This document shows, one piece after another, positions 6,501 through 32,244 of a DNA stretch of 64,000 bases; position 1 is the stretch's first letter; each line of letters starts with the position of its first letter. Below the pieces are notes generated by a model, which was given only the letters and a program-made list of their open reading frames with translations, was not told where the DNA came from and made no database searches. Both the position numbers and the translations under genes were made by a program. This DNA comes from Pocillopora damicornis (taxonomy: Eukaryota). The stretch covers positions 124,001-188,000 of the forward strand of contig NW_020844410.1 in the NCBI RefSeq assembly GCF_003704095.1, written 5' to 3'.

Positions 6501-9500
6501 CATACGCGTCGAATAAGACAAATAACGATAAAAGTAATAAAAATGAAATTAAAAAATAATCAAATAAATGTACGATCGGACAAATAACGATGAACACCCT
6601 ATTTCGCAACCATGGCGTGCACTACCACTGAAGGTATGAATTAAGAAAACAAAGAGAGGATAAAGTATGAATCCGGAAGGAAGACATCCAGGGTATTGAA
6701 GGAAAAGGAATTTCCATTAAAGAAAAGAAACGAAACAATGAGGCCATACTTCTCTTTGCTTCTCTCTTTTGGCTTGTTCTTCCTTCTGCTTCTGTCTCGA
6801 TACGTTTTCTGCATGTGCTCTCTACAGTGGAAACCAAAACACAATTATGAATCATAATAATAACTATAACAATAAGAGAGAGTTGACAGCACATTTTCAT
6901 TTTGGACGAATCCCAAGGCGAGCGACGAAGAGAGAGAGACGACGAAGAGAGCGACGAAGTAATCCAACATTTGCTTTGCCCTGTGATCGGTCGAGAAAAC
7001 GTGCACCGTTCTCTCAACCAATCGGTTCCAAAACTAAAAAACCAAACACAACTTGGTCGCCCGCGTTTTCCCGCGTTTAAAGCGCTTTGCAGTTTTTACT
7101 CTGAGTTCTAATTGGCTCTTCAAGGTATATTCTCCTTTCCTCTGATTGGCTGTTGTGATATGGTTCGACTTTTTCGACACTCAATTGAAAAGCGCTCTCG
7201 CAGCAATTTCATGCAATATTGTTCAAAAACGGAACGTTACATAATAGAATCACTCACCGTGAAATTCATAATAAACGCTGCAAAAATACCAAAGAAATCT
7301 TCTGTAGTAGCTGAAGTTGGTTTTTCTCCAAAGAACTTCACTGTTTCTCGGAATTCTTTGGTGCAATTTTCTTGCAAGCTAAGCAGATCAATTAATTCTC
7401 CTTCTGTTTCGTCTATAATGTTCTAAAGGTTTAGATTAAAGACAATATTTTAGACCTCACTGAAACCATTTAAAGAAGTGGCGCAATTACCGTCGCCATA
7501 GCTTCTATTAGGTGTCGGCATTTGTAATTCTATTCCAAATAAATTTGGATAATTTCAGTTTAGAAATTCAGCGTGGCTGTAAAGTTCTGAGGAATCTTAT
7601 GTAAAAACACATCCCATTCACAGGAATTTCTTTTATCCGATTGCACTCTAACCAATTCGGTTTGGTCATGTTCCCGGATGAACATAGTTGCCAGTTTGAT
7701 ATATAAATCTATCGATAAAACCATTCACTGCTTGCAACTCAGAAGAAGCGCGATGTAATGGTTTTCGCGGGGGAAAATTCGGTCTGGGGCCGCCAAATCA
7801 GCTTTTTTTTAATGGAATGGTAAAAGAATAAGCATAAAAAGAGAAAAAACTGGTAAAACTATGGAAAAAAGGTGTACAATGTGGGAAAATAAATGCGGTT
7901 AATAGAAAATGCACGCAAAAATCTCTAAACTAAATGAACGCTGATAGTGAAAACGAAATTCGAAATTGGCTTACCTTTACCGCAAGTGAAAACTTATCGT
8001 TTGGATCTTGTGACTTCAGTGACCGGAAAGCTCCAAGGTCTGACTTAAGCTCCTGTAGAAACATGTACCAAAGCGGAAAGTTATAGAAATGCTCTTTCGT
8101 TTGCGGTTTTAAGACATTTTTTTTGCAATTTGTGAGCTCGTTCGAACAGGACAAAATGAACAGAGCACTAGACAAACCTTCATTCCTTCAGCCAACTCTT
8201 CCACTTCACAAGCCACCATTTGCCCCGAAACTAGAAAAACAAAATCAAAAGTAAATTTCATCCAAGGGCATCAAACAAAAACATTATTTCAAAGCCTAAA
8301 CCAACGTGAGTTGGGTTACTATTGCGTTATTGCGTTTCAATTTGCTTGTTTTCACTCTGTCTCCACATTGGCTACTTGTGGTATGTTCCTCTGTTGTGTT
8401 AAGCCGTGGGAACCATTTTGAAATTCGACAACAATCACTCACATAAGTTCTTAAGCGTACCTTTAGCCGCTGTAGGCACTGTGTCGAGTTCTTCTTTGAT
8501 GTTTAACACTTCAGGGCACTTAGACTCGATGGACTGAACCAAAAAGTGCAGCAAAGTGGATTTGTTGTCTGAGGTTTTGGTGTTGCTGAGCTGTACAGAA
8601 TGAAAGAAAAAAAAACTGTCATTTAAAATATGGAACTCTGTCAAGCAAAAACATCTACAATGGCGAGAACAAGTCACAAAGGACTTCGAAGATCTCCTGA
8701 GCTGCGTTTAGGTATGTAAACTACTTTATAATTTTCAGTAAGAAAGTGACTTTAAAAATTTTGGGAGGTTTTAAATAGTACTTTGTTCATTGACTTTTCG
8801 GGGCCACAGTAGGAAAAGTTAATGTACCTTATTCAAATACTCAATCTTGAATGCAGCGGCTGATCCTATCCTCATATTTCCTTTGTTCATGTAATTACCC
8901 ATCTTTAGAACAAGCTGAAATCAATCAAAAAATCAGTTTATTAATCAGTCTAGTAAATAGGCAGACGGACAGACAGACAGACAGAGAAACACAGACAGAC
9001 AGGCAGATATACAGACAGACAGACAGAGAAACACAGACAGACAGGCAGATACACAGACAGACTGACAGAGAAACACAGACAGACAGGCAGATATACAGAC
9101 AGACAGACAGAGAAACACAGACAGACAGGCAGATATACAGACAGACTGACAGAAAGAAACACAGACAGTTGTATTCGATCTCCTCAGTCTATGATGATCA
9201 CGGTAGATAACAAAATCTAACCTAACTTGACCTCTCTTGTTCCTTCGTGGCTTATTCGTACTCTATTGGCGATTCGTAACGCGCACGAAATTTCATTTTC
9301 AGCTGCCCTTGTAAATTATATGCAGAGGCAACTCTCCATGGGCGTCAAAACGACTCAATTACCCTGAAAGATTACTTTCGACAAAAGATATCTTTCTAAA
9401 ACGCCGCAAAGGCTTTCATAGATAGGTAATCATAAAAGTAAGACACCAAACCTCTAGGATCTTCTTTAGTTTTGTACTATTTCTAAGTTCTCCTGATGCA

Positions 9501-12500
9501 TCAAGAACAGACTCTAAGTCCTGAAAAATAATTCAGTCAACAATATAAAAATGGTAATGATAATGATGAGAGTGATAACGATGATGATGATTATGAGGAT
9601 AGCAATAGTAACTAATAATTGTGTAGAAGAAAAGGAGCACGGGATTAAATAAATTCGAGTCAGTTTCGCTGAGCGAAACTTAAATCAAAGTTTTAATTTC
9701 TCTTCTTTCTTTATTTTTTGAGAGCTTAATGTTTAACGCCTTACCGGTTTAATTTCTTCCACTTTGTCAGCAAAACGAGCCTTGAAGAGCAAAGCTTTCA
9801 GTCGTTGTTTGTACCAAGGCACCTTACTCATCTGCAGAAAAGATAAAGAAACCTCACATACATAACACAAGAAAAGAAACTTAAAACATCGCTATAACTG
9901 AGTCGAAGACAGAGATAAGACCAGCACAAAAACAGAGCTCTTGGCAATTTTCAAAATTCTCTCTATGAAACCTCACATACAGGCAGCAAAATCGCAATCT
10001 CCATATTCCGTCTACATTGCCATGTATTAAGAATATTCAACTGAGAAAAAGTGTTGTGCACAAGAACTTATACACGTATGTTACATCAGGCCATTACCGT
10101 AACTACACGTACCTCGTAACAAAACCTGTCTGCTTTGTCCAACTTGGAAACATCGTCCGCGAAGTATTTAAACTTCTGGAGCTGGAAAGGAAGAGATGGA
10201 AAACATGTTAGTTAACTCAACGAGACCCTTAAGGAATTAAACTCACAACTATATGTAACTGTATGCTCATTCGGCTTCTTTTATTCATACGCTTGGACTC
10301 AAAAAAGCACTTTATGCAACGAAGACGATTTGAGACTCAAGGGAACCAGCCCCGAAAAAGTTTGTTTTTTTGCGCACAATGAAAGTAACGTCACAGAATG
10401 TCTCACCTAACATAGCTGCTGTCCTTACCTCTTTGCTGTCCGGTGCATAGAGGAGAAGCTGTTTCAAATGAGCCTCGCTGAACTTCTCATCGTCCATCGA
10501 CAGGAGTGCTTGTTTTATATCTTCAAATGGCATTTTCAAGTGACCCAACAAAATTGCTGCAAAATGAAACAGAACGCCATTAAATGGTAAATTTTACTGA
10601 CTGTGGACCGCGTGACTCTCACGGTACGAACACATCCCAGTTTCCGCAGCACTGAGTGACTAGAAGTGCTCCTCGAAGAGAAGCTAGTTTGTCCGAGGTT
10701 CCTCGCAGCATATCATCTGTTTATCGTAACCTGTTCGTCATCTTAGGAGGAGAGCAGGAGGAGAAAAGCACTTCTAGAGTGACGGGTCGTGATCAAAAAA
10801 CTCATCGCTTTGCCCAGACCTTTGTATCCAAAGCCAAACACTCACGGTAGTGAGGTGTTAAGCTTCAGCAAAGCATATCGTGAGAAGCGCCAGAGCCGTT
10901 GAGCGGCAAGAAAAGGAGTTCGCGACGCGTCTCTCGCCAATTCAAAAAGGAAAGCTTGCTCGCAGGCTAAGCGGGCTAAATGATGCTACAAATTTTGCGC
11001 GTAAAACAGCCAAAACGTCTTACATGCGAAACATTTTGACCGCAGAAAGGAAATTAGCATTCTTATTACGTACCTATGTTGTAGGTTTTCTTCGGATTCA
11101 TTACTTGTGGTTTCGCAGGCTTTTTCTCCTCTTTACCTAAAAAGGATAAAAATTATTACAATTTGGTTTGCAAAACAGCTACAAACTCAACTTTATGAGA
11201 AATCAAACTCACTTGATACTTTCTGTATGGCACTGAAACTTTGCTCGAGTTGAATGAACTCGATGACTTCTTCTGACGGCTCGTTTTGTCCCAGCTGTAA
11301 TACGAACAAGAGAAAGATTGGTCAGTGGTGGAAAGCTGCAGAGGTTTACTTTGCTAAGGGTCGTTTCAGACAAATTTGACATGGCAATGGTAGAGCACCT
11401 GATTCAAATCGCTTTACTTGAAAATAAACGAACCAAATGAAGACAAACGATTTTACGAGATATGGCCTGTGAATCCGAGAAGTGCCAGAATCGTGTGAGT
11501 TTGCCGCTTCTACTTCAAATCCGCTGCTTCAGATCGCATTCCATTCGTCGCTCTTTTTGACGGGTACATGTCGAATAAGTTGATTGGAGTGCGCCAAAGA
11601 GACAGTTAGGTATGTCAAAGGGTAGGTCTTCCTATTCTCATATTCGCAATTATATGTGTATAAAACGTGACAACGTAGGCAAACTCAAGCAACAAAGTCA
11701 TAATCAGCGTTCTGTTTTCCTTTTGTGTGATGCTTGTGTTGGGCGGGGAGAGCGAATTACAGGTAAGCGTCCTATTTTACATTTCAAATCGCGCCATTTT
11801 TAATTTACTTCGATAAACGAACTAACCTCTTAATTATGTGTTTTAAAATGAAACTTTAAGGCAAAAAAAAGGATACTTTTACAAGATCGTTAATAACAAC
11901 AATCCTTACCTTAGCCCAAACAGTGTCTTCTAAACCAGCGATACTCAGTTTCTCCCAGTTCACTCTCTTCAATTGCATTGGTGCAAGAACGTTTCCAGCA
12001 CCCCCGACAGGGGGAGGAGGAGGGACAGACGGTGGGGGAGGAGGCGGTGGCGGTGGAGGTGGTGGTGCTCCCATGGGGGGAGGAGGTGGAGGAGGAGCGG
12101 CGCTTGTACTTGCGACATCTTGGGTTCCTTGGTAAAAGCAAACGATTTTGAATTAGACTATAAACTCACACACAGAAAATCTAGCATACAGGTATCTGAG
12201 ACTTTGAGAGACTGCAAAGACATGAATTATTAGTAAATAACATGCATGGTAAGTGAGTAAACAACATCGGAACCTCGATCGTAACACCGTTTCAGTCACG
12301 CACTGTAAGGATTCTCTATAAAATGTTAATTATAGTTTAGCGAATTTACCTTCTGTTTCTTTCCCATCTTGGTCTTTCCGCCGAGCTTTAACCGCAGCAT
12401 CTAGGGGATTCTCTACAGCGTTGGGAGAGCTGGGTCTACTACCGGGATCTGAAAAAGAAAGAAGGAGAAAAGTCTGAAAAAGAGCGGCGAAAAAGGGAAA

Positions 12501-15500
12501 GAATCAGTATTTCATGGCGAGCGGAACCCGTGACTATCGACACGCCGGTGCCTTGGCTCACTTAATGTCCTGCACACTGAGGCTGGGACTTGAGCGCAAT
12601 GGCGACTTCGAAAATTCTCGTTAAAAGTGATATTCATTCATTTAATGGGAGAGATAAACATATAAATAATTCTGTTCGGGCTGACTGTACCTCCAAGCTC
12701 TTCTAGTTCTTTCCTCTTCTTCTCGCTTTCATCAAGCGCCTCTTTTGTCTCCATTAATTCCTGTGTAGTAATCGCCAGTTGATGTTGGATTTTCTCCACA
12801 GCTTCCCCAGACGTTTCTCCTGCTCCAACAACAATACCACTGTCTCCACTACCACCTGAAGACGCTGAAAGCGGGGTTGAGGTAACAATTCCCTGCCCAC
12901 GGTTTCCTGGGGCTCCTGGTTCGGGTGAGGTGCCAGTGAAAGGAGCGTGGACCTGTGCTTGCGTCGTCAGGCTGGTTACACTCGACTTCCTTATTTCATC
13001 TGCCAATAGCGCGTCGGCTAACTCCTCTGTCAATAACAGGAGATATTCAAGAAAGTAATCAACACTGCGCAACATGGCTTTAGCCATAGTTAAAAACGGA
13101 TTTCCTAGCCCTGGTTCTTCGAAGGGTGGATAATGCTATCCACTTGGTAAATCTTTATCCGATGGATTACTCAATATGTTTTGTAAACACTCATCCGCTG
13201 GATGGCGATTTATCCCTTGAATAGTGTTGAGGAACCGGGGCCTCGCTATATCGACCCAATTACACTCTTGTTAGATATACCTGGTACCTCTGTTCACTTG
13301 TTTAGTGCAATGAGGCCCGGTCCATTTACTAGCCTGCTACGAATTACCCACGAAATATCCAACATGAAAGTTTTTTTAAACAGAAAAAGCTTTTGCACTC
13401 GACAAATTAAACATCCAATGGCCAACCCACGAAAAGAACTCTCCTGCCCCGTAGACCTTCATTGTATCATAGCTTGTACCATAATCTTCATCTAATATTA
13501 AAGTTATTGAATCTTACCAAGTCCTCCGAGATCCAGTTCCTCGTCGTCATCATCACCCCATCCGGAATCAGGAGTGCCATTTCTGGATCTAACATCCCTC
13601 ACAGGCACAGTATCCAAATCTGACCCTGTGAAATATCAACAATTAATTGTATCCTAAGGTTTTGAAAGTCCTCGGCAGCAAGCCATTTCTGTAAATTTCT
13701 ACTGTAGAAACTGTTATGCTTTATCTCAAAGACTAAAAATTACTAAATAATGCTCGAAGTTGCAGTTTACACCAAACAGAGTGACCATTTCTGTAGCAAT
13801 GTACATACGAAGTGTAAAAACGGTAAAGTCACTGGAGAAGTTTCCACTAACCATAGCTAAATCCTGGGCTATGTCGGCCTCTGACTGCACCAGATGAAGG
13901 CCATTCACCATAAGGCTCCTCTGATCGAACTAACAAGAGAAACATGAACGGATTAGCTCAGTAAGAGCAAAGCCAAAAGCTATCTTATTACAACCAAAGA
14001 TGCAAAATTGTTATAAAAGCATGCTCAACATTTGACGAAATGAAGGGAAAAACAGGCTCGTGGAAAAGAAACTGTTATGAACCAGTATTTATGGAGGGAA
14101 AACCAGTATAAAGCCATACAATTCAATATTAGTAAAAATTAATAAAAGGATTCTGGCAGTCACAAGGAAAATTTTGATGATTGTTGGGAAGGGACAGGGG
14201 TGTTTTCTGTACCTGCTCCTGGCGTTGTTGTACGAGATCTTGGTGCGTCTACAAGCCGTCTTGCTTGCACTCTGTACAGTACATCCACAACTTCATCATT
14301 GTTAGTGTTCAGACTCGGTACAACACCAGCTAAAACAATACGAAGATTTTCAAAGTAAGTTCTTTAGCATCTTTTGCAGGGGAAAGTTTGCCTAGTTATT
14401 CAAAAATATATATCTTCATAAATTGATTTTAAAAATGTACAAATTAGACTCCCTGTAGCTAAATGTCTCAGAAGATCTTCTCTAAAACAGGGAAGAAAAT
14501 AATTTATCTCATTTTATATAGTAAGCAACGAAACCAAACCATGAAGGCAACATCAGGACAACTTGAATATAAAAATAAAAAAAAAAAACAAAAGAATCTT
14601 CTCAATGATTTCACTTTCAAAATAGAATGCACTTGCAGGGAAAGGTCTTGAAATCAAGATGCCTTTCCACTTGTAAAGCCAGTTGAGTTTTATAAATGTA
14701 CAGGTAAGTTATAAATGCAAAGCAAGACTCTTCACATACTCTCCATCTTCCTGGATATCATTCTTGCTGCAGCTCTGTCAAATGCTTGTTGTTCAGCCTC
14801 CGGCAGAAGTTCACTTAGGTAATGTAACATCTGCAGTTTAGCTCCATCATCAAGGACAGGTTCCAGTGCATTGATTAGTCTCTGTACATTTCTAAAGATA
14901 AGAAACAGACCCTTAGATAATAATCCTCTCTACATCCAGAGAATGCTCTCAGACCCCTTTCTGATAGCAATCCCGTATCCACCTAACCATTGGTTATAAA
15001 TTTAAGACAAATAAGACTCATTTTTATAAAATGATGGGAAAGTTTTCTCACTAGTTACCTGTCTCTACTGTACTGATCAAGGCTCTGCTTTACCACAAGT
15101 TGCTCTCCACGTGTAAGTAAATGACTCATCTGTAGGTTGGTGAATCAAAATGAAGCTTTGTTATAATTGTAATTACCAAAAGTCAAAAGTTAATAATGTT
15201 CTGTCCATGTGGCATCTGAAGACAAAAACTGATGAAAAAGTGTTGACATGAATGAGCAGTTCTGGAGAATTAATGAGACAAAATCACATAAAAATTGTAA
15301 AGCGAAGTACCTGTATTTTGAACTGGCGGGAAAGTGTTTGCAAGTCACTTCTGTTATACCCAGTTCCATTTATGAAGAGATCACCTCTGCGGGAGAAAGC
15401 CTTGGATGCTCTTGAGGAACACCTTGACACAGTTGCAGGTCTCTCATTTTCAAAGGTCACAGAAAGCTGTGAAGACTTGCTGGATGACGGCAGGGATGAG

Positions 15501-18500
15501 AGAGACGACTGATGCTTTAATGCACTCATGGGGCGCCATTGAACTAATAAGCTTGGTTTTGAACCACTTCCTTTCAACAGCTGCACTACATGTTGATGTG
15601 ACTTTCCTCTGCAGAAAACAAATTAATGCATATTTAGATGACTTTAATTGATGCAACCTTCTGTCAGCTGATTTGAATGACTACCTCACCTTACAGTCAA
15701 AAAATCTGCATTTTTGTTTAATTCAAAGTACATATTTTGGTTAGTACTGTTTGCGGCAAAATTGGACAAAAAATTATTTATATTAGGGCAGAAGTTTCAA
15801 GAGGAAGAATCTAAATTTACTCTGACCATCAATGTTTTTTACTAGATTAATGAGTAAAAAAAGAAGCATTATCCTTCTATGAAGGCTTAATGAAGTAATA
15901 ATCACAGTTTGTATGTGATACCTATGGTTAAGTATATGGTATGTACAAGCAAGTACAGTGTAGGATAGTTCATAATGAAACTTTTACTGCACCTGACATT
16001 TAGTCCATTTATCTCAAGTATATGGTCACCACCTTTAATCCCAGCCTGAGAAGCTGCTCCTCCTACAAAAAAGAAAGTCATTGGCCAGTGAGAGGATTTC
16101 AATCAGAACCACCTTAGAATTTTTTTGGCTGTCTCACATGTATCCCCAACCATGACTAGCACTTAACAAATTTTGCTACAGAATAAGAGCTATGGGTCAG
16201 CCCAGATTTACTCATAAAAACTGTGTGAAATGGGCTAACTTTGAAGTAATTTCAGTTAATATAAATCAATTTTCTTTGTTAGCCTCACATTTTCACAACC
16301 TTTCTAAATAATCACACCTTCCATGTAAGTTATCTGTTCTCTGCCTAGTCCTAACTGCCATCTAATCTGATTGTCCATGCAGGTACAATATGCCTGGAAA
16401 TTGTGTGAAAGATGATATCTCCAATTGCACTTACTGTAACTACCAGCCAAAAGCATACCCTGCATGTATGTCAGCCTCTAAGTGGCTAGAGAGAACTTGA
16501 TACATACAAGTTTTCCTCACTAAATTTATCTCCTAATACAAACAAGACTTACAAACACTTTGAACAAACACTTACCCCTGTCAACAGATTTAACAAACAC
16601 AGGAGAATCCCCACTGAGTGTAAATCCAAACCCTGACCCAGGTCCCTCTCTTATTATTCTTACAGTCCTGTGCATCGCAAACAGTGAAGTCTTCAAATCA
16701 GTAAAACTTGTCCCATTAAAATACTAAATTAACCCTTTCACTTCTTGGCATGACCAGGAAGTAATTTTTCTAATCAAAAGCAGGATTACATGTAAGCAAT
16801 GCAGGGAGTAATTTGGTACAAATGCATGTGTATACTTACTTTTCAAAAAACATTTAAATGTGCATAACTATATGCAGGCAGTAATGTTTTTACCCTTAAC
16901 TCCCATAAGTGACCAAGACAGAATTTCTCTTTGCAATTTCAATACAAAAATGAGCAGGCAAGTGATGAGAATAATGAATAATATCAATTAGGGGATTGTT
17001 AGTTGATCCAATACAAAATTCTCCTTATTAACATCATGAGAATTGTATGGCAGACAGTAAGGAGAATTACCAATGAGATCTTGGGAGTGAAAGGTTAACT
17101 GAAGTTTTTATGAATTCTCATCACTAAGAATTGCTATATTTAATGTTACACTGATTACACTTTGAACAGTACCCATAACTGATTGCAATGAGGTTCAATT
17201 TTATCCTGGGCACCAATTTTAGTGGCTGAACACTTCAAACCCAAAAAACAATGATACTTGCCTCGGTGGAGCAGCCATATTCTCTCTTGATTGCCGTCTT
17301 GCTAAATTCTCCCTGAACTGATTGGCGTGAGTTGTTCCGACTGACCATGTTCTAAGAGAAAGATTTCAGCATTAAGGCAAGGTTGGGCGAAAAGCTAAAG
17401 GAAGCCCATCAGATTCCCTACTGACATTCCCTACTGTTTACACTAAAGGAAAGAAGAGCTGTAAATCTATCATGGTTCTCTATAAGTATACAAAGAATAA
17501 GGGAGTTTCAACCAAGAACCTTAGCCAACAAAATTTCAAGATTGCCTTTAAACTGTTTAGTGTTTTCCCTTAGGAAGCAAACAAAACATGCAATTGTGAG
17601 CAACTTACCCAAACCTGCCAAGAGCAGGAGTGTTACTGCTATTATATTCTGGAAACTCTAAGTCAGTGCCGCTGGAGAAATCTGGGAGGAGGTCTTCATC
17701 AACAGATTGTTTCTCGGAATGCGTTATTTCACCATTCATTCCAACCAAGATGTCAAATAGTGGCTTTTCCCGTTTGGGGATGAAACTCCTAAAAGATAAA
17801 AAAAAATTAAATTAAAAACAGATAGTAATGTTGAAAAAATTTATCAACCTAACAACATTTCTAAGTTCATTAAAATCTATACTTATTAAAGACAAATAAA
17901 TAATTTCAAAAAAGAAATAAACAGAGCAATTGATGAATTATGAATAAGAACAGGAAGTATAATGTACAGTAAAATGAGGAAACAGCTCCTAGAGTAATGC
18001 TAATGACTTCACAGTTTTGGTGCAATGGTGTGACTGTCTAGTAAACTAGGTAATTACTTGGGAATAAAACTAGATAGACCACCCCAGTTTGTTATAATAA
18101 TAAGATTAAATATGAGCAAAAATAATTACCCAACCCATCATGTCAAGAAAATCTACATGACTGCAGGAGGAGAGGGCAATATGAAATTTCTGCTTTTCCT
18201 CTATATTTCTATGTTATATCAGTAAATTTGAAGTCATTTACCTTTGATTCATAATTTTCCTATTTGAAAAAGAAAAGTGGAGCAAAGTTTTCTCTTGATA
18301 AGCAAATCAGAGAAGCAAGACATGACAGAACTGTTGATGCAATTTATCTATTTTTTAATACAATACCTGATGTCTCGCAGCAGTTTTCTTTCCACTGGAG
18401 TTTTAAGTATTCTTTTGAGATTCTGTGCCAGTTGCTCAACAGATCTGTCTCGTGCATATTGATTGAGGGCCTTGACAAGCTCCTTCTTAATGCTTTCATT

Positions 18501-20038
18501 GCCAGCTAAGTAATAATTCATCTTTAAGAGAAAACAGCAAAAGTCAACTACATTACTACCAATAATTCTGAAATCAGCTCCCCATACAATTGACAGCTGT
18601 CAGTGGTTAAATATGTCATATAAAATAGTTCACTTCATCTTTGGTACACAATGGTCAATATACTTTTTATGTACGATAATTGTGGTTTTTTTTTTCTTAT
18701 ATTTTTAAAATAGCAATTTTATGTCACAAACTTCACCACTTATGCCACTCAAAAGTCAGTTGTTATTTAACTGGAATTTAATTAAAAGCGGGAAGTAAAT
18801 ATTGTCTGTTCTTTCAGTTTCGATTGTCCAAAATAAAGATTCATGTATCAGCCAAAAGAATTTGATACACTATAGCCTGCTATCAAATATGGTAGTCAAA
18901 TCTTTATTCATGTTTTCTAGCAAGCATTTGAATCTTGAGTTTATCTTTACATCATTCCGGGAATTTTGTACAACAATTAACTTGTCATAAACTTACAACC
19001 ATTGTGTTATCTTGGATTGAAAGAAAAACCCACTGATTGCTTTTATGGTCTTGAAAATGTTAAACATTTTTCTTCCTTCCCATTTGTTGACAAATCAAAC
19101 AAGTTAATGATAAGTCAAAAGGCTGGGCGAGCAATACAGCCCATGTAATGTAATTGACGTGTAAAATCTACGAAATTAAAAGTACGGAATTATAATAATA
19201 TGCATGAACAATTGAAGTTGAATCGAACAAAATGCGTGTTCATCTTTCTTTGTCTTGGAATGTGTCAAGAATACAACAGTCCAACGGAAAACGTATCATT
19301 TTGACAAATGGAACAACATTGGGGTTTGTAATCGCTTTAACAGAAATGTCATACAACTTGACCAATATCTAATTATCCTTATTTCGCTACCCAAGTGTAA
19401 ACTTATGTGTTTGATGTCCATACAAAGACAAGAACGTGGATCAATAATAAATAAACTCTGCAAAACAGCGGTGTAGAACTGACCTGCACGAAGAAATCTT
19501 TAGCTCTCTTGTATCGCGAAGACGAACTCTTTCCTTCTTTTTTATCTGTAATTCCGATGTCTGCAGCTCCGGCAATGAGGACTATAGAAATTGTAGGTCC
19601 ACAAGTATCTATCATTTCTCCAACTTGATTCTCGTTCATATGTCTGAGGTTAACACCATTTAAACGGAGAATTAAATCTCCACGACGAATGCCAACGTTC
19701 TGAGCCGGGCTTCCCTGCTCTACATCCGCAATGAAGACAGGACCCTTTCCGCGAACTGCAAAACCAAACCGTCCTCTTCTCCGACGCAGATCAAACGTTC
19801 GAATGCGTGAAATTACAGCGAGCGCTGGAGGGACAGTTCGCGATCGTTTTGCCAATAGGATTATTTCTTCCTTGCTTAATCCTTGAACGTTTTCCCCATT
19901 GACTTCGAGTATTTGATCACCGGGTTGAAGTCCCGCTCTTTGAGCGACTGAATTTTCGTCAACAGACAGGATGACAACAGGAGCTCGTCCGCCGACGGTA
20001 AAACCGAAAGCTTCGGGCCATTTTTCGTTCGTACTCAT
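3538..20038 (-). CDS. GRID2IP: Delphilin/GRID2IP-like formin: PDZ-PDZ-HN-PDZ-HN-coiled coil-FH1-FH2 plus a ~900-aa Pro/Ser-rich tail; 28 coding exons, ~2130 aa
   Basis: Exons in transcript order: 20038-19484 (two PDZ), 18521-18367 and 17788-17609 (harmonin-N-like), 17351-17262, 16667-16576, 16062-15993, 15608-15311 (third PDZ, GFGFTL), 15129-15059, 14891-14740 (second HN), 14329-14213, 13929-13852, 13625-13518, 13026-12691, 12448-12350, 12127-11910 (FH1 polyPro, LKRVNWEKL..DTVW), 11294-11213, 11136-11074, 10556-10429 (NIAILL), 10181-10113, 9831-9745, 9520-9452, 8914-8828 (GNYMN), 8590-8461 (KLSNTKT), 8230-8178, 8052-7975, 7422-7258, 6821-6750, 6228-3538. Total 6393 nt, with phases consistent throughout. 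Confidence 0.88.
5893..6090 (-). repeat. Coding 33-bp tandem repeat, 6 copies, encoding a PSSPRxASPNS-like 11-mer
   Basis: Translation: PSSPRVASSNS/PSSPRVASPNS/PSSPQVASPDP/PPSPREASSDL/PSTPRLASPNS/PSSPRFASPNS. Confidence 0.9.
6960..7200 (-). repeat. Interspersed repeat family; related copies at ~28893-29145 (+) and ~8290-8430
   Basis: Shared motifs such as ccaatcagaactca(aag), aaacgcg(g/a)gaaaacg and ...caattgaaaa... between copies in different introns. Confidence 0.6.
8961..9167 (+). repeat. Intronic composite minisatellite: ~36-bp unit built from (CAGA)n, about 5 copies
   Basis: Repeated acagacagacagagaaacacagacagacaggcagatat. It produces the spurious ORFs at 8851-9210 and 8950-9162. Confidence 0.92.
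13110..13240. repeat. Interspersed repeat with palindromic tatcc.ctggata motifs; second copy at ~27935-28060
   Basis: Both loci carry gtggat..cgctatcc.ctgg.taaatct.tatcc..tggat....tatccgctggat(a/g)gcg.tt. Confidence 0.65.
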
Positions 20039-23000
20039 GATGACAACAGAAGAATCAGCTCAAATTTGAAGCTTGAAAAAAAAACTCGAGAATTTTCCTT
20101 GATGTTTTCTTTCCACCACAAAGTCGTTTGTTTATCAAAAACTGATCCTTCTCTCGATTAAGCCATCCATTAATAGCACAAACATCTAAACCAGGGTGCC
20201 AAAGTTATAACAAACTTTCCATAAAGTTTTCCGTTTTGAGAACGCCTTTCGCTTCAGCGATTAATTTGTTATCTTGGAATCCTTGCTGTTTAGATCCACG
20301 ACAAGTTGATGACAATAAAAGCAAGTGGAGATAGAGACACGTTTTCGAAGAGTAGCTTAACGCGGATTGACAGGGTCGGCGACGCTAAATATGAAACCAG
20401 GCAACCAGACCCGCAACAGCGTATAGGTTTCACTGTAGCAACGAAATGTCGACAAAACCGTAAAATTTCTTTCTCAAACACAATGTTTCCTTGGATTTGA
20501 TACTTAACTCACGCTGCAAAATTGAAGAATGAATCCAAGTTGTTAGTTCAAAAACGGAGACGTGATTGTTTAATCCATTCCCTGCGCGGTATTAAGTTAA
20601 AACAATTCTCTACTTCCAATTACGCTGTTGTTCGCCCAGCCAAATCACCACAATTATTCATGCTAATGGCATGACGACTTAAGCACATCCCGACCAAATT
20701 TGCATATCTTTAAAATTCTGAAATCCAACGTAGTCATCGTCGACAGAGAAAAGATTCCGAAGCTGTAGACTGCCGAACCGAAGCTCACTCTGTTCATAAC
20801 AAGCTACGCTCAAAAAGAATCTTGGGTATTTTTCTAAAGAGTCCTTCAGAGTGTTTGAAAGAATTTTGTCATGGGCAAAATAAACATTCCTTGATAGCCA
20901 CCCTTGACCTTACGTCATAATCTGGAGACAAAGCGTTGTAACGCAAACTCTTCATCCGAGAGGAAATGGAAGAAATGAATTACTAAAGAACCCCTAGAGT
21001 AGCAAAAGGACGAATTTCTCATTCTACGCGCTTGGATCCAGCTCTTCAACCGTGACGGAACTAAATTAGTTTTCTGCGAATGTAGATTTTGGCTGTCTTC
21101 ATAGTTCTCATAATATTTATTCAGCGATCTTGTTTTGCTATGTGCTCGATACGTTTACTTAACGAAGAAAAAACTACACGATTGGCCTATGTTAGAGAAA
21201 TGGGACACCCGCGATCCAAGTAAAATCGATCATTAATCGAGTTAAATATTTAATTATAAATATCTGACCTGGCTTGCCAGCTTATGTTGTCAAAAAAAAA
21301 ATGATATGCCGTTCATTTGTGAATGGAAAATTTACCTGATAACTTAGGTCAATTAGGAGAAACATCATCAATAAAAATTTCGAGCGTAAAATCATTTACA
21401 CCTCAAACCATCGGATGTCAGTTCACAAAAGATTTCGAAACTATGAAAAAGTCACGGTATTGTAAATGACGTCATCGGGAATGTTGACGTCACAGTTTGT
21501 GGCTCTGAGGTTCTTTTTCTCAACGAACTTAACTGTCAATTGGAAACAACCACTACCCGATTTAAGTCTAATCATCAGTTTGTCGGAAGGCGAGATTTCA
21601 CTTGACCTGCTGATCCGTTGCTGAGAAAAATTTCTCGTTGTTAACAGAGAAACAGAGGAATACAATAACGATCGACTGAATTGTTTCTCCATGTTTGCAT
21701 CAGTTCATCTCAGATTCAACGAAGTTTAATTTCCTCTCAGCACTGTTTTTTTTTTGTACGTGCCATGTTCAAAGCAGAGGAAAACCCAGATTAGCTTAAA
21801 TAATTTCTCCGTGGTAAGAGGTCAACTTTAAGCATGTTAACTCGCGTGACCCCCTCATTACGCATTTATCACAAAGTCTGGCTTCTTCTTTTTTTAATGT
21901 CGGAAGGCCTTTTTCCACTACTACATTTGATTTTTTTTCATTGCAGTTTAGAACACTTTTACACCCGTCATCCATGATACTATAACGATTTCTTCAGAGA
22001 TGAAGAAGGAAAAAAAAGAAGGATTGTCATTAACATGAACAATGATAAATCATTTACATCTATTACGCTCATGCCAACCTGCACGTCTGCTGAAAGTGTT
22101 AGCAAAAATATTTTTTCTTTATAAAAACAGTAGCGCACAGTGGGAGGTGTGCAGCATACTTCCTCGTGAGACCAATTCTAATCGTTACTGGACTAACGTT
22201 ACTAACGTTTAACTATATGTGTCGCTCACGAGTTCCAGTGCTAGAGAAGAATTTGTATTATAACGAAATCATGCCTTAATTTTGGCCCATTATTCATAGC
22301 TAATCACCAGTCTTAAAATCTTTGTTTTCCTATCTGAGGATGGCCAGAATTCCTATTGCCATCGTAAATTTCTGATTTCTAATCGGAAAAATTTTATTTA
22401 AGTGAGAAGGCTAAATGATTAAAGTGGCCACGCGATTTCAAGTGACAAAATTAAATTTTTAATGAGCTTTGTCACTACACAGACAGGAGACTAGAATAAA
22501 CCGAAAGAGATTAAAGAAGGCTTTGAGGATGGTCTAGATCCCATTACACGGATTTTTTGCTAAAAAAAAAAAAATAGGGGCAATTTTCTTGAAGAACAAA
22601 CCTGACCCACGGTAGTTCCTTTTCATGATGCAAATTTCTTGATTGTCAGTTTCTTGAAACGAAAAGCGATTTTGTTTTCGATTATCTAATCCGTCGTTCA
22701 ATACTTCAACACTCTAATGTCCCCATGAAAGAAAACTAAAAGCTGCTTATATGCTATACAGAACTATGATGAGGTTAACAATCTTTTTCACTACATTTTC
22801 ATCTTCGCGGGCGCGCATAGTAAAGCAGGTTGTGCGCGCGGGCAGGCTTGTTGTCGTGATGGTATTAAGAAAACGTCAAAATCTATTATGACGTCATGAA
22901 GACCGCTCTTTTACAAAGCAACCACTGAGGTGTTTGCACTTACAGAGCTACTCGGCAAACAGCTTCCTAATGTAGATACTTGAGTAAATCTAGACAGCCT

Positions 23001-23078
23001 AAAAGATCGAAGTTTTTAATCAACAATGAGAATTTATCTTAAGAAAAGAATGTGCGCGGTGGATGAACTATTTTTGCC

Positions 23079-26000
23079 ATGACAGAGTCGGAAAAGGATT
23101 CAAGCACTGTCACAGAAGGTATGTGCCTAACATATCCGCAGTAATAACCATAAACTTTTCGCTGGATGGTGTTAATATCCCATTTATGGAAGGTCTTACG
23201 CTCGAGTCAGTGAGATTCTCCGAGATTTTGTTTACAGAGATATATATTTTCGTTGTCTTAAAATTGAACGAACGAAAAATTTGGGAACTCTTCCAGACGA
23301 GATCAAGGAAATAGCTACGTTTTACCAAGTTGTACAAAAAGTTGAAAATTGTTCATGACTTAAAACAAAGCAAACACTTATCTTAGGTAAACTAATAAAA
23401 CAGAATAATTGATTCAAGGGTCACTTGAAAAGAAACCGGTGCAACTCTAATGCTTGTGTATGATCGAGCCAGCACGGAAACAAGATGTGCTTATTTCAAT
23501 TTTTCATTATAAACTTAAAAACAAAGCATTTGATTACAGCGCATCCTGCGATGCCCATCGGAAGCACTTACAAGTTTGAAACAGTTAATTTAGCATTTCC
23601 ACTCTAATAGATCGGCATATCATCTAATTTATAGCGACGTTGTTTACTTTGGAAATCTAATGGATCGAGCCGACAAAGCTTATATTGAATCGCCAGCAGC
23701 TAGGAAGAAGTAGCTGAGTGTTTGCTGCAGGCATAAGTGTACCGGTTTTGATCGATTTTCAATGATGTTTGTCCCTATTAGAAACCGTTTATGACAAATC
23801 AACAGAAAACATCTCGTAATTTCGTTCCACTTCACCACAAAATGATTCCTAATATTCATTTAAACAGAGGTCTCATCAGTAATCCCCGAATTTGATTTGA
23901 TCATTGTCAACTTGTCAAGAGAAACTTCACGAGAAAACTTTTTTTCTTTCAACTTCGCAATAAACATGGTAAAAGCGCGCTTTATCTTAACGTTTTCGCG
24001 CGGACACAGACAGTTCTGACACCACTTCGAATTCCTAGGGAACTAAAACCATTCCTAACCAAGTGAGTCCCGGCGACACTATCAAAACGTAAATAAAGTT
24101 TGATTGGCCGTGAAAACGTAGCAACTTTGATTTTTCAATAACTATAGGCATCACTTTATGCCCTTATATTAAACTAAAATATTATATAGTAATATTATAC
24201 TATCACTTGAAGCGATTCCGGCAAATAATTTTGTTTTAAGATATCTCGCCCTAACTTCTAACCATTGTAATGTTGCTTCTTACTTTCAGGTGCGACGCAA
24301 AACAATCGGAACTTCTTCAACAGTACTTCAGAGTTTTTCAAATGGTAATTTTATAAAATTTATTACTTTCTTCCTCATTTCATTATATTTCTATAAAAGA
24401 TGTTTATCAAACTCTATCGTCCTTTTCTTTCCATAGCAACTGGAAAGTGATTTTACCTTTTATTGCTGTAATTCTACTGTTCTCTGTTACCGTTTTCACG
24501 AAAAAGGACATCACTTTTGCAGTCAACATCTGGGTTTTTCCAAGTAAGCACTGCTTTTATTTCATCAAGCAAACATGATGCACTTTTAGTTACTTCAGAG
24601 CTAAATCAAAGCCAATCCCGCTCCCAGAGCTTCCTTCACTCGTGTCCAGCGAGACTGACTAACAGCTAATTCCTCTTTCACCAATAATGATCGTCTTTAT
24701 AGGTTTTGCTGTGCTCATGGCATCCTATGTGTGTTCAGTTCTCAGTGTGCAAAACTGGATTCCTGCTCTCCGACATCAAGGTATGCGAACAACTCAAAAC
24801 AACTGTTAGAAATTTCTTTAGCTACTTGAGTGTAGTATTTTCAACCATTACTCTCTCCCCATTCCCCTTTGTGTGTTTTTAAATTTAGCCAATCACGTTC
24901 AGAGCGCTTAAATTTGAGTTAGAAGTTTAGATGTGAACATTCACTTTTTTGTGCGTTGAGTTTTGTCAGTTAACAGTTTTTCTTCCTTACGCCTTGCTTT
25001 CGTTTGGATTTTAAGGGCCTCTTATTTAAACGAGATCTAACCCAAACCGCGGTTTTCCGCAAGCAGTTGGCCTCGGTGATTCTCCATAAGAGGGCTGATT
25101 TAATTTAAATAGATGTCCGTCTACTTTTAGGTTTCGGCCTGTTGACACTGTTCGAAAAAAACTGATTATTAGATAAAAGGTTCGGCTAAATTGAAGAAGG
25201 CTTAGAGCGTGGTGACGGCTAAACTTTGTTTAAATAGCCGGTCCCAAGAATTTTGGAAGGATCTATTTTAAGCCAAATATTGATTTCAATTTAGTACATT
25301 TATGACACACGCAAAAACAATACTTGGTACCTCGATTTTTCTTCAGACTTTTGGCAAAATCAAGGTCCGCCATTTTATCCAGTTGTCAATGCAGCCCCTG
25401 CTCCACCCCCACCACCAAGCTACCCTCCCCCTCCTCCACCTAACACCATAAAAGGACATAAGGGCCAACGAATCGACTGTAGAAAACTGTCTTGGGAGCA
25501 ACTCAGCCCAGACCTCCTCAAGCAAGACACCATCTGGAAAAAGGTGAAATTGAAACTGCTACAGCTGTGTACATATAGTTTTATATCAAAATGTTTTAAT
25601 TCGCTGTTATACCGTATAGCTTTGGTAATGTAAAAATTGTTGTTGTTCTGGATCAACACTTGCTGTATGTTTCTTCAAAAACACTATTAATTCCCCCATA
25701 AAAAAAAAATGAAAAACATTTCTAAAAGTTACCGACTCCTTAAGGGGAAAGACGGGGTTTCTTTTTCATTATATGAAGAGACTGTTGTCTATGTTTTAGG
25801 TTACCCTGAGAGCAAACAAGTAATTTGTGCCGTCAGGAATTTAATCCAGATCTTACACTGATCCCCATATGTATTTCATCTCCTTCGTTTAACTCACTTA
25901 GAATAACGCTTTTCTCTGATTGAACTTATTCCTCATTTAGGTTAAAGAACATCTGCCTTTGGAAGGTATTTTTGACTCTGATGATATAATAAGGGAATTT

Positions 26001-29000
26001 TCTGTCACGTCATTGTCAGGTGTGTAATCATGTATTTTCAAAGCATGCTGACACAGTAAATGATTTTATACGCGCTGACCAAAACAAATATGAAGTTCCT
26101 TGCATACATTGTCAAAATATGAGACTATAATTACTTCTTGCCAGCTCGTTGTCCCAGCCGATATATTGACAAATACAGAGTTATGTGACACAGGTTAAAG
26201 AAGCTTGATGATAGCTATAATCTAAAAAAAACCTTCGCTTCCCTTGAAGTCGTTATATGATTAGCTGAATTTTTCACGCATTTTGATTGGTTGTTACCCG
26301 TGATCTATGAGAAGATTGACGCATATATAACGTCACTGTCAACAACTTTTCCGCACGGAACCATGGAATCTAATAGAATCTATTTATTAATTAGTGCCAA
26401 GAGAATATATACTCTTGTCAATACATAATATGTGCAGTGCTTATTTTTCAGTGTTCCTTCTTCCAAGAAAAAATTAACTGTTGATATTCTCTTGCTTCTT
26501 GCCAACATAATGACAGGAAAACCACAGCATTGTTTCTATAACTAGCATGTTATGTAATTTTATTTCAAAGGGAGTTCACTGAAAAAGACCAAAAGAGAAA
26601 ATGCAATGGACGAAAAGAAGATTTTCAATGTCTGTAAGTACTTCAGTGTAACGAAAAAAAAAAGTATTATGTAGCAGCAAACTAACTCCATGTTAAGCAA
26701 AAAAGGTGAAGAATTGAATCCATATATGTGGACCTTAATGTTGTTTATTGAATCGCCATTTAATGTTCCTTGAGTGCGAAATTAACATCTTTGATTAAGG
26801 TGCGTTGTGAAAGAGTTAGCCAAGATAGATTTGCACACAAGATGGATGGGACGAATTTGATTACCACAAAAAATTCCAGGAGATCTTTTTTTCGGGAGGA
26901 AGGAAGATTTCGCGTGACCTACTCAAGAAAGGCCACTAAGGAGGCTATTTAAACCATGGTCTACTGTCTATTTCATAAATGAATTAGCTTACTGATATAG
27001 TTGCTGATCTATCACAGCGATCATTTTGACGCATTACAAGCTTAAAGCAGAAGGCGTTAAACAATGCTTGATGTCCGGGACCACACAGCTTACATCTGAC
27101 GTACTAAGACAGGTGTTGGCATTTGCACCGGATGATCAAGAGGTAACAGCTGTGTAGAGATATGCACATAAAAAATGACAAAACAGAATGATTAGATAGG
27201 AGTGTGCACACGTGCCCTAACTGAACAAGAATGGTTTAACGGATCACAAAGAATTGGGTATAAATGTTTTAGTCAGCGGCTAAAATGAGGATGAAAGTGC
27301 AAAACCCCTCTGTTTGGTTCTTAAAAATTCGGTTCATTTCATTTTTCTTAGCTTTAATTGGTTTGTGTGGACATGTTAAGGGCGTTTATGATTCAATATT
27401 TCATGACAAGTGACTGATTATGGAAACTAGAGGCAATTTTTCTTTTTTGCAAAGATTCACATTTACAGATGAGTCTTTTTTGCAAAGACTCACAGTTAAA
27501 AATATTTTTATTCATACAAAAACTTGAATCTTCATCCAAATGAATTTATATAACCCTGTCGGGCTACTTCACAACTACCATGTTCGTGCACTTTATTAGG
27601 CCCGAGCTTTGCGGAAAATGGAGAGAGAAAACGGGATTTCACTTGAGCCAGCTGAGCGATTTTATCTTCAGGTAACGGTATTATAAGAAAGCATATAGTT
27701 AGCCAGTTGAATACGTTTAAACGTGAGAGGTAAAGGCTGTTTGCTAATTGGGATTTATTTAACTTTATTACGCATTAAAAGGCAGGGCCGGGATTCATTT
27801 TCGATGGTCGCGTTATAACAATCTTCCACCTCTGTAGTGTTTATTGTTGGTTGATTGAAGGCAAGTCAAGACAGAAGCAATTCATGCTCTAAGGCAAAAC
27901 ACTTACAGACAAAACACTTACAGTAATTCATCCACTTTCCCCGCTGTTGGGAGAGTGGATGACGCTATCCGCTGGATAAATCTCTAGCCTACGGATAGCG
28001 CAGTATGTTTTGGTAACTCTTATCCGCTGGATAGCGTTATGCGACTTGTGAACAACTGGGCTCAAGAGTATGAAAGTATATCAGCAAAAGGCGTCACTCA
28101 CACTGTTTGATGGTAATGTATCTGAAATGTCTCTTTTGTCATTCCTAGGTTGCAGCGACTGTGCCTTCCTACAAAGCAAGACTCCGCACTGTTTTACTCA
28201 AAGCGCAGTTACAAGAAAGGATCGCACAAATCAAACCAGTAATAAGTGTATCCTTTTTTTGTTTCATATGATCCATAACTTCTCTTTCTTTCACTTTGAT
28301 AAGGCCTTGCCTTAAATTGATTTACGTCACTCCTGAAAGATTCAAGTCGAATATCGACTGATCAGAAACAGTGACGAATTTCTCCCGCTTATGAAAGATC
28401 GCAGTTCGTTTTCTGTAGCAAACTTTTTGAATCTACGAACATTCATGACAAAAATTCACATTTGATTTGTATTTCAGCATCTTGAAACAGTCATTACCGC
28501 CTGCCAAGAGCTTATGGCCTGTGAAAAACTCCCAAAATTCATAGAGGTACAAGTAAAATGTGCATATCTAAGCAAAGTCTTTTGTTGCACAAACATTTCA
28601 TGTCCATTTACCCACATCTATCATTCATACTTATTCTGCCAATTGTAGATGGTCTTGACCATGGGGAACATCATGAATGGTAGCCAAACCTCCGCCTTTA
28701 AGATAACCTTTGTTACAAAGGCAAGTTTGTTTATTTTGTTCCACTCATAATCTATTTTTACACGCCCTAGTTGACAAAGGAACTGAAAGCCGGCTGACAT
28801 ACCTCTTAGTACACGCACAACAATCTGTATTCACTTCGCGTTCATCCCAGGCAACTTATACAGCAGCTTTAAACATCAGTATATTAAATTGAGCATTTTT
28901 CGATGGAGTCTCCTAAAAAACAAAAACCAAATTAACAACAAAGGCCAATCAGAGAGACTTAAAATACCATTACGAGCCAATCAGAACTCAAAGGCAAAAC

Positions 29001-30719
29001 ACGCAAACCACCTAAAACGCGAGAAAACGTAGGTGATCAAGTTATGATTGTTAAGAATGTGACGCGAGTTTTTTGACCCAATCAAAGAGCAAAGGAAAGC
29101 GAAACCAATGCAAGCCCGGATCACTTCCGACAATAATTGAAAATTCCCTTCAACCATTTTTTTCCCAGCTGATGGATTACAAATCATCTTTGAACAAGGC
29201 CACTTCTATGTTAGACTACCTAACGCGAGTTATCATCACAAAATGTCCGCACATCGCCGCTTTGGGAGATGATCTCAGACACGTGGAAAAAGCATCAAAA
29301 GGTGAGGATATAAAATCATTTTCAACTCACGCTATAATTTGACACAAGAGATTATCTGTCACTGGTAAGGTTTTTTCCTTGTAACTAGCTAGCATTTCAT
29401 TCCCAATTAGTCGCGTACATTGCGTAAATGGAGCTTGACAGATTTAAAAACAACATTGATGTTCAATTGGAGAACGAGTTCTACGCCTTAGTTACCGTTC
29501 TCTGAAGCTCCACTACAGGTTACATTCCAGGCGATATGATTCTTTTGTAACCTTGTTTTCCCGACTTTTCAGTTCCATTTAATTCTCTTGACAAGGAAAT
29601 ATGCGAGCTGTCCGCAGAAGTTGAGGTAAAGCAATCAGTTTCCAGTTATCATTTGAAGTTCTTTGATTTTAAGGCGTTTGAAGCTGCCTTGTTGGAACTT
29701 TCGAATTCTTAGATGTTCATATATTTCAATTCACAGGTCCTTGAGGAAGACGTAGAGAAAATAAACAACGATAGTGTAGAGGAAGACTACTTCAGTGCAA
29801 GTATTGGAGTATCCTTAAAAGCTCAGTATAAGACTTGGACTGCTGNNNNNNNNNNNNNNNNNNNNNNNNNNNNNNNNNNNNNNNNNNNNNNNNNNNNNNN
29901 NNNNNNNNNNNNNNNNNNNNTACTGAATCTAACGGTGAACCTCACTCAAACTGAGCGCCTTTTCCTGGGCGCAGGTAGACTATTTTAGGATTTCCCTGGT
30001 ATCTGAGTTACGATATAGAAAACATCTGGAAAATTACGAATTAGATTTAGCAGGGTCTGTGAGTCACTGAAGGGCTACTCTTAAGAAAATGGAGTTATGG
30101 CCACTCAGTTTTTCGCGAAAACGTTGTGTTATAGTTTTGTGTAAGTAGTATTTTACCGTCACTGCAATAAAAGGGTACTATTTATTGCATACCGGAGCAT
30201 CTTTATCGAGCTGGACATAAGCAGCTGGAAGATCAGGTTGGGTAGTATGATAACCCTTAGCATAATTAGGGTTGGCACAAAATTCCTCATAATTTATTCA
30301 TATTTTTGTAGTGAGAAGTTATCATTCAGAGGGAGTGATTAATTCTCATCCTTTATCGAGTTAGGAATAAGAACTTGTGAAAAAAGCTTCAAGGTCAAGT
30401 CATACGAAGCTTTTCCTCAACAAACTTGTTAGCTTTTTGCTGTTTCGGCAAAGGAAGACCTTAAGGACGTGTTATCGCTTCGGAGGAATGCCAAGCGAAG
30501 CTTTAGCCTCCTTGTGCAGTACTTTGGCGAAGAGAGTGATAAACCGGAGGAATTTTTTGGAATCTTCGCAACATTCCTACGGCAATTTGAGGTATTCATC
30601 AATCTTAATGAATAACTGTACTCCTAAACTAGGTAGGACCCTAAGTGATTGTGATTGGTTTTGATCTTCACGATTTAAATTGTTTTTTTTTCCAGGATGT
30701 GTTGAAGACGTATAGATGA
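23079..30719 (+). CDS. Second formin (delphilin-derived FH1-FH2) with two predicted N-terminal transmembrane segments; 17 coding exons, ~495 aa
   Basis: Exons 23079-23118 (gccATG with in-frame TGA upstream), 24290-24344, 24437-24543, 24703-24780, 25347-25543 (FH1, RKLSWEQL..DTIW), 25941-26019, 26571-26633, 27018-27142 (NVSIIL), 27600-27671, 28149-28238, 28478-28546, 28649-28720 (GNIMN), 29169-29301 (KLMDYKS), 29573-29625, 29737-29808, 30433-30591 (YFGEE..PEEFFGIFATF), 30696-30719 (stop). Total 1488 nt, open throughout. The FH1-FH2 part is secure. The four 5' exons rest on splice signals and phase continuity only. Confidence 0.8.
25035..25260 (+). repeat. Interspersed repeat; second copy at ~36370-36575
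   Basis: Both copies begin tct(a/g)acccaaaccgcggttt..cgcaagca..tgg and share attct.catargagggytg.ttt and ttgacac.gttc..aaaaa. Confidence 0.7.
29809..30432 (+). other. U12-type (minor spliceosome) GT-AG intron
   Basis: Donor GTATCCTT at 29809. Branch-point-like TTTTCCTCAAC at 30411-30421, about 10 nt before the AG at 30431-30432, with no polypyrimidine tract. The flanking exons join in frame. Confidence 0.8.

Positions 30720-31812: not shown

Positions 31813-32244
<432 letters not shown>

Follow-up and report, generated by a model that had tools for sequence, protein, structure and literature searches.

A 64,000-nucleotide (nt) stretch of the Pocillopora damicornis genome (NCBI RefSeq assembly GCF_003704095.1, contig NW_020844410.1, positions 124,001–188,000 of the forward strand; the whole stretch is hereafter called the window, and all positions refer to it) was analyzed in this study, which revealed a short formin gene of 17 exons on the plus strand. 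Its 495-amino-acid (aa) product carries two hydrophobic segments ahead of a short FH1 region and an FH2 domain and, judged from these segments, is very probably an integral or monotopic membrane protein. The translation is letter-identical to P0026, i.e., P. damicornis RefSeq protein XP_027038267.1, which is already public under the name "DAAM1-A-like", a misleading label that hides the architecture described below.

Gene structure and transcript evidence

The exons were delimited by sequence, RNA joints, ortholog alignment, and identity to P0026. The 5′ untranslated region (5′UTR) covers at least 22944–23078 (135 nt or more), as the RNA contig X1 record 1 starts at 22944. Exon 1 (23079–23118) begins with the ATG start codon and encodes residues 1–13 of an acidic, polar, and weakly conserved N-terminus, and exon 2 (24290–24344) encodes residues 14–32 with a conserved NFxN..SEFxKC motif. 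Exon 3 (24437–24543) contributes NWK, hydrophobic segment 1 (residues 36–52; 24447–24497), a TKKD turn (24498–24509), and, from 24510 on, the N-terminal half of hydrophobic segment 2; the other half (24703–24749, to residue 79–83) lies in exon 4 (24703–24780) and is followed by a conserved WI.ALRHQ. Exon 5 (25347–25543) encodes the short FH1, with two polyproline tracks at about 25391–25441, and the FH2 lasso with the invariant tryptophans W143 and W157.

The remaining FH2 and an 8-residue tail are encoded by exons 6–17 (25941–30719), namely 25941–26019, 26571–26633, 27018–27142, 27600–27671, 28149–28238, 28478–28546, 28649–28720, 29169–29301, 29573–29625, 29737–29808, 30433–30591, and 30696–30719, with the stop codon at 30717–30719. 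Two introns in this part are unusual. The intron 28721–29168, within the region of FH2 that encodes GNIMN...KLMDYK, is of the GC-AG type (donor GCAAGT, AAG|GCAAGT) and is needed for identity to P0026. The intron 29809–30432 is of the U12 type: its donor is GTATCCTT, and TTCCTCAAC, 12 nt before the acceptor AG, resembles a branch site. The junction across this intron is confirmed at the protein level only (RefSeq P0026, P0011, and transcript open reading frames, ORFs). An assembly gap of Ns (29846–29920) falls inside this U12-type intron and thus hides no coding sequence.

At the 5′ end, an AG acceptor precedes each of exons 2–5 and a GT donor follows each of exons 1–5. The first four introns have phases 1, 2, 1, and 1, and exons 1–5 form a single open frame that runs into the polyproline FH1 and the start of FH2. 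Assembled RNA contigs (Logan) of four runs from three studies were compared with positions 22600–28500; these contigs are no gauge of expression level. All four 5′ introns were found as GT..AG joints in the contigs: 23118>24290, 24543>24703, and 24780>25347 are present in runs X1 and X2 (study P1) and in run X9 (study P4), and 24344>24437 is present in X2 and X9. The following six FH2 introns (to 28238>28478) are also supported by RNA joints, and the more distal exons by identity to P0026. One X9 contig of 444 nt (record 26) matches exon 1 from 23034 onward, exon 3, and exon 5 up to 25465, and its remaining letters are consistent with exons 2 and 4, the joints of which are also present in X9; a single molecule therefore joins the first exon to FH1. 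The random-primed run X6 yielded low-depth unspliced pieces only, so that the junction evidence rests on two studies. A previous reading of the window made from the DNA letters alone (the sequence-only reading) had proposed four small exons with consensus splice sites and these phases, their linkage to FH1 in RNA through these four junctions, and a 495-aa model, all of which were recovered exactly. An older GenBank model (pdam_00008753, 420 aa) omits exons 2 and 3.

Two repeat-like tracts within the gene, 25013–25236 in intron 4 and 27932–28113 in intron 9, attract many diverged RNA contigs at a depth of up to ~500, whose joints are non-canonical (TG..TG, CG..TG) and whose ends are loose on either side. 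These pile-ups most likely represent transcribed interspersed repeats of other loci and not alternative splicing of the formin gene.

Start codon and coding status of the small exons

The ratio of nonsynonymous to synonymous substitution rates (dN/dS; Nei–Gojobori method) was calculated for Acropora and Montipora, the least saturated pair of orthologs (dS 0.79). It is 0.149 for residues 18–93, which indicates purifying selection, 0.093 for KKD plus segment 2, 0.131 for FH2, and 0.60 for the variable tip (residues 1–17). Orthologs contain no frameshift or stop in the N-terminal exons, hydrophobic exons included, and both hydrophobic segments are present in every predicted isoform, even one from Montipora that uses another first exon. 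The sequence-only reading had taken these exons as coding and had named conservation of the hydrophobic frame at a dN/dS below 1 as a check; such conservation is observed among coral orthologs.

The internal ATG at 24717 (M73), a candidate for a later start, is not conserved and corresponds to Ile in Porites, Montipora, and Acropora, and the next in-frame Met is M198, past FH1 and the lasso. The 5′UTRs of four species contain an in-frame stop 15–81 nt upstream of the start (15 nt in P. damicornis). The start context reads tttgccATGa in the window, and four species share the consensus ttt[ga][gc]cATGA; RefSeq and transcript-derived ORFs of five genera share the same start ATG.

The leader also contains an upstream ORF (uORF) from ATG 23026 to TGA 23080–23082, the stop of which overlaps the main start (ATGA). 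In Porites (18 codons) and Acropora (8 codons), too, a uORF ends at this ATGA overlap, with no clear case in Montipora; the overlap may reflect termination–reinitiation control of translation. A further ORF from ATG 23063 (130 codons, in another frame) was found in Pocillopora alone and was rejected.

FH1 and FH2 domains

The FH2 family (PF02181) matches residues 139–487 of P0026 with 233 bits against a cut-off of 34.8, and similar matches were obtained for the Acropora and Porites orthologs. When exons were scanned one by one, those downstream of the small exons likewise matched Pfam FH2. It is the sole Pfam family in P0026: there is no match to PF06371 or PF06367 (GBD/DID) at E-values up to 1, nor to PH or DAD, and a PDZ domain was not matched in P0026, P0017, or P0014. 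This Pfam result agrees with the sequence-only reading, in which the protein lacks DID and DAD, and means that canonical Rho-released autoinhibition cannot apply to it. FH1 comprises only two polyproline tracks (PPPPP and PPPPPP; residues 111–125) just N-terminal of FH2, whose prolines are invariant across genera, and the chain ends 8 residues past FH2.

Invariant FH2 residues include W143 and W157 of the lasso, I208, GNIMN (331–335), and K354 in KLMDYKSS. By motif, I208 and K354 are the putative equivalents of the knob Ile (I1431) and the post Lys (K1601) of Bni1p, which are required in actin assembly. The closest solved FH2 structures are those of DAAM1 (E 1.6e-40) and mDia1 (E 4e-33), followed by FMNL3 and INF2. 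At least 10 FH2 loci were identified in the genome by a Pfam FH2 scan; a search of the same genome with P0026 recovered the exons of this gene only, the exon-wise search being too insensitive to rank paralogs. Automatic names of family members vary between "DAAM-like" and "Delphilin".

Conservation of the N-terminal module

Alignment of the orthologs showed that residues 1–17 are variable and that conservation begins at N18. From there, all full-length orthologs retain the same N-terminus across both major scleractinian clades, in the order NF.N..SEF.KCNWK, a hydrophobic 17-mer, T(K/N)KD, segment 2, and WI.ALRHQDF, followed by FH1. The two segments are conserved in different ways: segment 1 keeps its character and not its sequence (41–71% identity), and segment 2 is nearly invariant, ITFAVNIW(V/I)FP(G/S)FAVL(I/M)(A/V)S.VCS, with K55–L72 unchanged except at V65 and S68. 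Of the two juxtamembrane cysteines, C32 (invariant) lies at the outer end of segment 1 and C78 (near-invariant) at that of segment 2. N24 was invariant in a first alignment of six sequences, four of which have an N-x-T sequon there; the sequon is replaced by N-P-S or S-P-S in Acropora and by K-L-T in Montipora foliosa.

A possible source of this module was not found in the databases searched. A search with the region of residues 15–100 returned only this coral formin family (18 candidates, 272–866 aa) and no donor, a Pfam scan of the two hydrophobic exons identified no family, and the ESM Atlas gave nothing usable for residues 1–100 and only generic FH2 clusters for the whole protein.

Hydropathy was computed as the Kyte–Doolittle mean over 19 residues (KD19; threshold 1.6) for five species and a DAAM2 control. 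In P. damicornis, two segments reach the threshold, residues 36–52 (peak 2.33) and 57–83 (peak 1.91), and the maximum past residue 100 is 0.93. Across the five species, segment 1 peaks at 1.69–2.33 and segment 2 at 1.91–2.19, with maxima of 0.91–1.11 past residue 100, and the DAAM2 control never reaches 1.6. By hydropathy, therefore, the two long hydrophobic stretches noted in the sequence-only reading both have the length and hydrophobicity of membrane-spanning segments, and this property is conserved. Segment 1 is flanked by W-K and T-K-K-D, and segment 2 by K-K-D and by Q-N-W or acidic residues (E/D). The segments are 4 residues apart and are preceded by ~35 polar, acidic residues, with no ectodomain and, as judged from the polar nature of the first 35 residues, no apparent signal peptide. 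Wimley–White octanol sums also flagged a segment of the DAAM2 control and were not relied on.

Distribution of the family

A phmmer search with exon 5 against 1.84 billion representative sequences identified 10 proteins at E-values up to 0.001, including a full-length Stylophora protein of 492 aa. Searches with this Stylophora protein and with a six-species profile recovered the same small family, with all members at 552 bits or more, and no other protein above 151 bits; the next matches are bird DAAM2 fragments (151 bits, 29% identity). Members of the cluster come from Pocillopora verrucosa, P. meandrina, and P. damicornis; Porites lutea, P. lobata, and P. harrisoni; Montipora foliosa and M. 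capricornis; and Acropora millepora, A. muricata, A. palmata, A. cervicornis, and A. digitifera. Profile and protein searches added Stylophora pistillata, Porites evermanni, and Desmophyllum pertusum. Orthologs from Stylophora, Porites, Montipora, and Acropora are 492–514 aa long, the Desmophyllum entry is a fragment, and complete ORFs are present on transcript contigs of 1.6–2.0 kb from Pocillopora, Porites, Montipora, and Acropora. The matches of these searches, which used a length window and a word filter, included no protein from an anemone, an octocoral, or a hydrozoan. Both major clades of stony corals are covered, and this pattern is suggestive of a family restricted to stony corals.

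Genomic fragments of the Robust clade (L006–L008, 0.7–1.5 kb) are too short to reach the upstream exons, and the DNA encoding the Stylophora family protein was not located. The most distant exon-5 match, P0010, lacks hydrophobic exons upstream of FH1, where it has a long tandem peptide repeat instead, and was set aside as a different formin. It is encoded at 200–1800 of a 2.9-kb metagenome contig (L001; JGI 3300034274), where more than 20 tandem copies of a unit of ~25 aa (PPEGQ.KSETDSTIA.CESICSSQ) stand in frame before the FH1/lasso exon.

Predicted membrane topology and possible mechanism

The features of the N-terminal module suggest, with a probability of about 0.7 and in agreement with the sequence-only reading, that the two segments form a two-pass hairpin with both the N-tail and FH1–FH2 in the cytosol. 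Such a protein would consist of a polar N-tail of ~35 aa, helix 1 (17 aa), the TKKD turn, helix 2 (23–27 aa), a 25-aa linker, the short FH1, FH2, and the 8-residue tail. The two helices would enter a cellular membrane as a tight hairpin, leaving the N-tail and FH1–FH2 facing the cytosol. FH2 would dimerize via its lasso, with the dimer tethered by two hairpins, and FH1 would recruit profilin–actin. The tethered dimer might in this way nucleate and elongate filaments while keeping their barbed ends within ~50 residues of the bilayer, and such nucleation may be constitutive.

The AlphaFold2 model (16-sequence alignment) speaks for the hairpin in that it has helices at 13–51 and 54–80 with a break at the TK turn, but its confidence is low (mean predicted local distance difference test score 49; 31–46 in the N-terminus), and it carries little weight for topology or fold search. 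Several observations weigh against the hairpin. A naive Hessa-scale sum is slightly positive for both segments. Flanking charges leave the orientation unfixed, and the 4-residue loop holds two lysines, for which the positive-inside rule prefers the cytosolic side. For a simple membrane anchor, segment 2 is unusually close to invariant and unusual in its central Pro-Gly/Ser, which may point to a more specific role.

A different membrane arrangement, which we regard as unlikely, would have segment 1 as a single-span reverse signal anchor with the N-tail outside or lumenal and TKKD cytosolic, and segment 2 as a re-entrant or monotopic wedge bent at Pro-Gly/Ser. The loop lysines would then obey the positive-inside rule, a bend would suit the invariant F-P-(G/S)-F in the middle of segment 2 and the constraint at nearly every position around it, and the invariant N24 with its N-x-T in four of six sequences might be a lumenal glycosylation site. 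However, this site is not conserved in Acropora or M. foliosa, which argues against an obligatorily lumenal N-tail and leans toward a cytosolic one, and N24 lies just 11 residues from the segment. Arms of 10–12 residues are also short for a stable wedge. The hairpin instead places C32 and C78 on the same side of the membrane, with both conserved juxtamembrane cysteines on the cytosolic face. Both topologies keep FH1–FH2 cytosolic.

It is quite improbable that the hydrophobic stretches lie outside the membrane, as a buried helical core or as an oligomerization or regulatory element of a soluble formin. Segment 2 is in fact so highly conserved that it resembles a protein–protein interface, but charge-free stretches of 17 and 23–27 residues with KD19 values of 1.7–2.3 and K/D/E plus Trp flanks are typical of membrane helices, and no other part of the coral protein, nor of the DAAM2 control, reaches 1.6. 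Segment 1, moreover, retains hydrophobicity over sequence like lipid-facing helices. Finally, the idea that the four small exons are 5′UTR or an annotation artefact and that the protein starts at ATG 24717 or later, to which the older GenBank model and the uORFs of the leader might lend some color, has almost no probability left and is rejected given the dN/dS of 0.15, the replacement of M73 by Ile in three genera, the shared start ATG of five genera with in-frame stops upstream, the junctions in RNA, the isoforms that keep both segments, and the loss of FH1 and the lasso that a start at M198 would entail.

Comparison with known formins

Plant class I formins such as Arabidopsis AtFH1 and AtFH5 resemble the predicted coral protein in having an integral-membrane anchor N-terminal to cytosolic FH1–FH2, no GBD/DID-DAD autoinhibition, and barbed-end machinery at the membrane. 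In the plant proteins, a signal peptide that is cleaved off, an extracellular proline-rich domain, and a single membrane helix occur together, a set that the coral protein does not share: it has no apparent signal peptide, two closely spaced hydrophobic segments, and no ectodomain, and its FH2 is nearest to metazoan DAAM1 and mDia1. Because of this FH2 affinity, the recovery of the family from stony corals only in the searches above, and the different architecture, the predicted anchor points to an origin independent of plants, as the sequence-only reading had suggested, and the likeness is best read from these sequences as convergence and not shared ancestry.

Among animal formins, the DAAM and Diaphanous-related formins (DRFs) provide the best-matching FH2 domains (DAAM1, mDia1), whereas the coral protein is without GBD, DID, DD, and DAD, is about half as long, and is separated from DAAM2 by a very large score gap (552 bits or more within the family vs. 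151). INF2-CAAX is an animal formin that resides constitutively on the endoplasmic reticulum membrane with FH1–FH2 in the cytosol; its anchor is a C-terminal prenylation and it keeps DID and DAD, whereas in the coral protein the N-terminal peptide helices would form the anchor, and prenylation and DID/DAD are both lacking. Delphilin/GRID2IP is likewise a non-DRF formin without DID and DAD, and its name is attached to the entries of Porites harrisoni, Desmophyllum, and A. digitifera, but it has N-terminal PDZ domains, of which the coral protein has none. According to a statement cited in a formin survey, mammalian L-delphilin is membrane-bound through N-terminal palmitoylation.

In reviews of the formins, the integral-membrane type is regarded as a synapomorphy of plants. 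The Pruyne surveys (PMC5047451, PMC5628938), which sampled Nematostella and not corals, recognize nine metazoan formin subtypes, none of them membrane-spanning, and the 2024 review by Cvrckova and colleagues re-examined earlier candidate non-plant membrane formins and found no evidence for non-plant integral-membrane formins. Our literature searches for phrases denoting a transmembrane or membrane-anchored formin brought up no paper on an animal integral-membrane formin; nearly all matches to "transmembrane formin" were plant papers, and the accessions of the coral family occur in no searchable paper.

We would give slightly better than even odds to the fuller interpretation that this is the first integral-membrane formin in animals, hairpin-anchored and autoinhibition-free, which would assemble actin on a specific membrane in convergence with plant class I, with the near-invariant helix 2 serving as a docking or oligomerization site for a coral-specific partner. 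A tie to skeleton-anchoring cells or the symbiosome is conceivable, and a role in a lineage-specific cell structure is possible because the family appears restricted to calcifying, mostly symbiotic Scleractinia. If this interpretation is correct, a conserved and expressed formin of corals that bears two membrane-type helices would be an animal exception to the plant-only distribution and a case of convergent evolution, as well as a natural minimal, regulation-free formin for studying how a membrane-fixed FH2 handles filament rotation. The finding also corrects the misleading automatic names "DAAM1-like" and "Delphilin" that are spreading in coral annotations.

Genomic neighborhood

The short formin lies head-to-head with a delphilin/GRID2IP-type formin on the minus strand (3541–20059), which contains two PDZ domains (19406–20059), FH1 (11859–12152), FH2 exons (about 7261–10593), and an 896-aa open tail exon (3541–6228). 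The 5′ ends of the two genes are at most ~2.9 kb apart, so that a shared bidirectional promoter is possible. A local tblastn search of the upstream part of the window with the translated model of the short formin gave one high-scoring segment pair of 46 aa (46% identity) with the FH2 of the neighbor; similarity confined to this segment indicates that the short formin is not a recent local duplicate of the neighbor.

An intronless histone H3 gene (31840–32241, plus strand) is located 1.1 kb downstream of the formin stop. In Stylophora, the protein P0012 (575 aa) is annotated as a formin–H3 fusion, which indicates that the synteny of formin and H3 is conserved and that the P0012 model is a fusion artefact. 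A tandem repeat (8851–9262) within an intron of the delphilin-type gene would encode peptides resembling (RQTDRETQTD)n in several reading frames of both strands.

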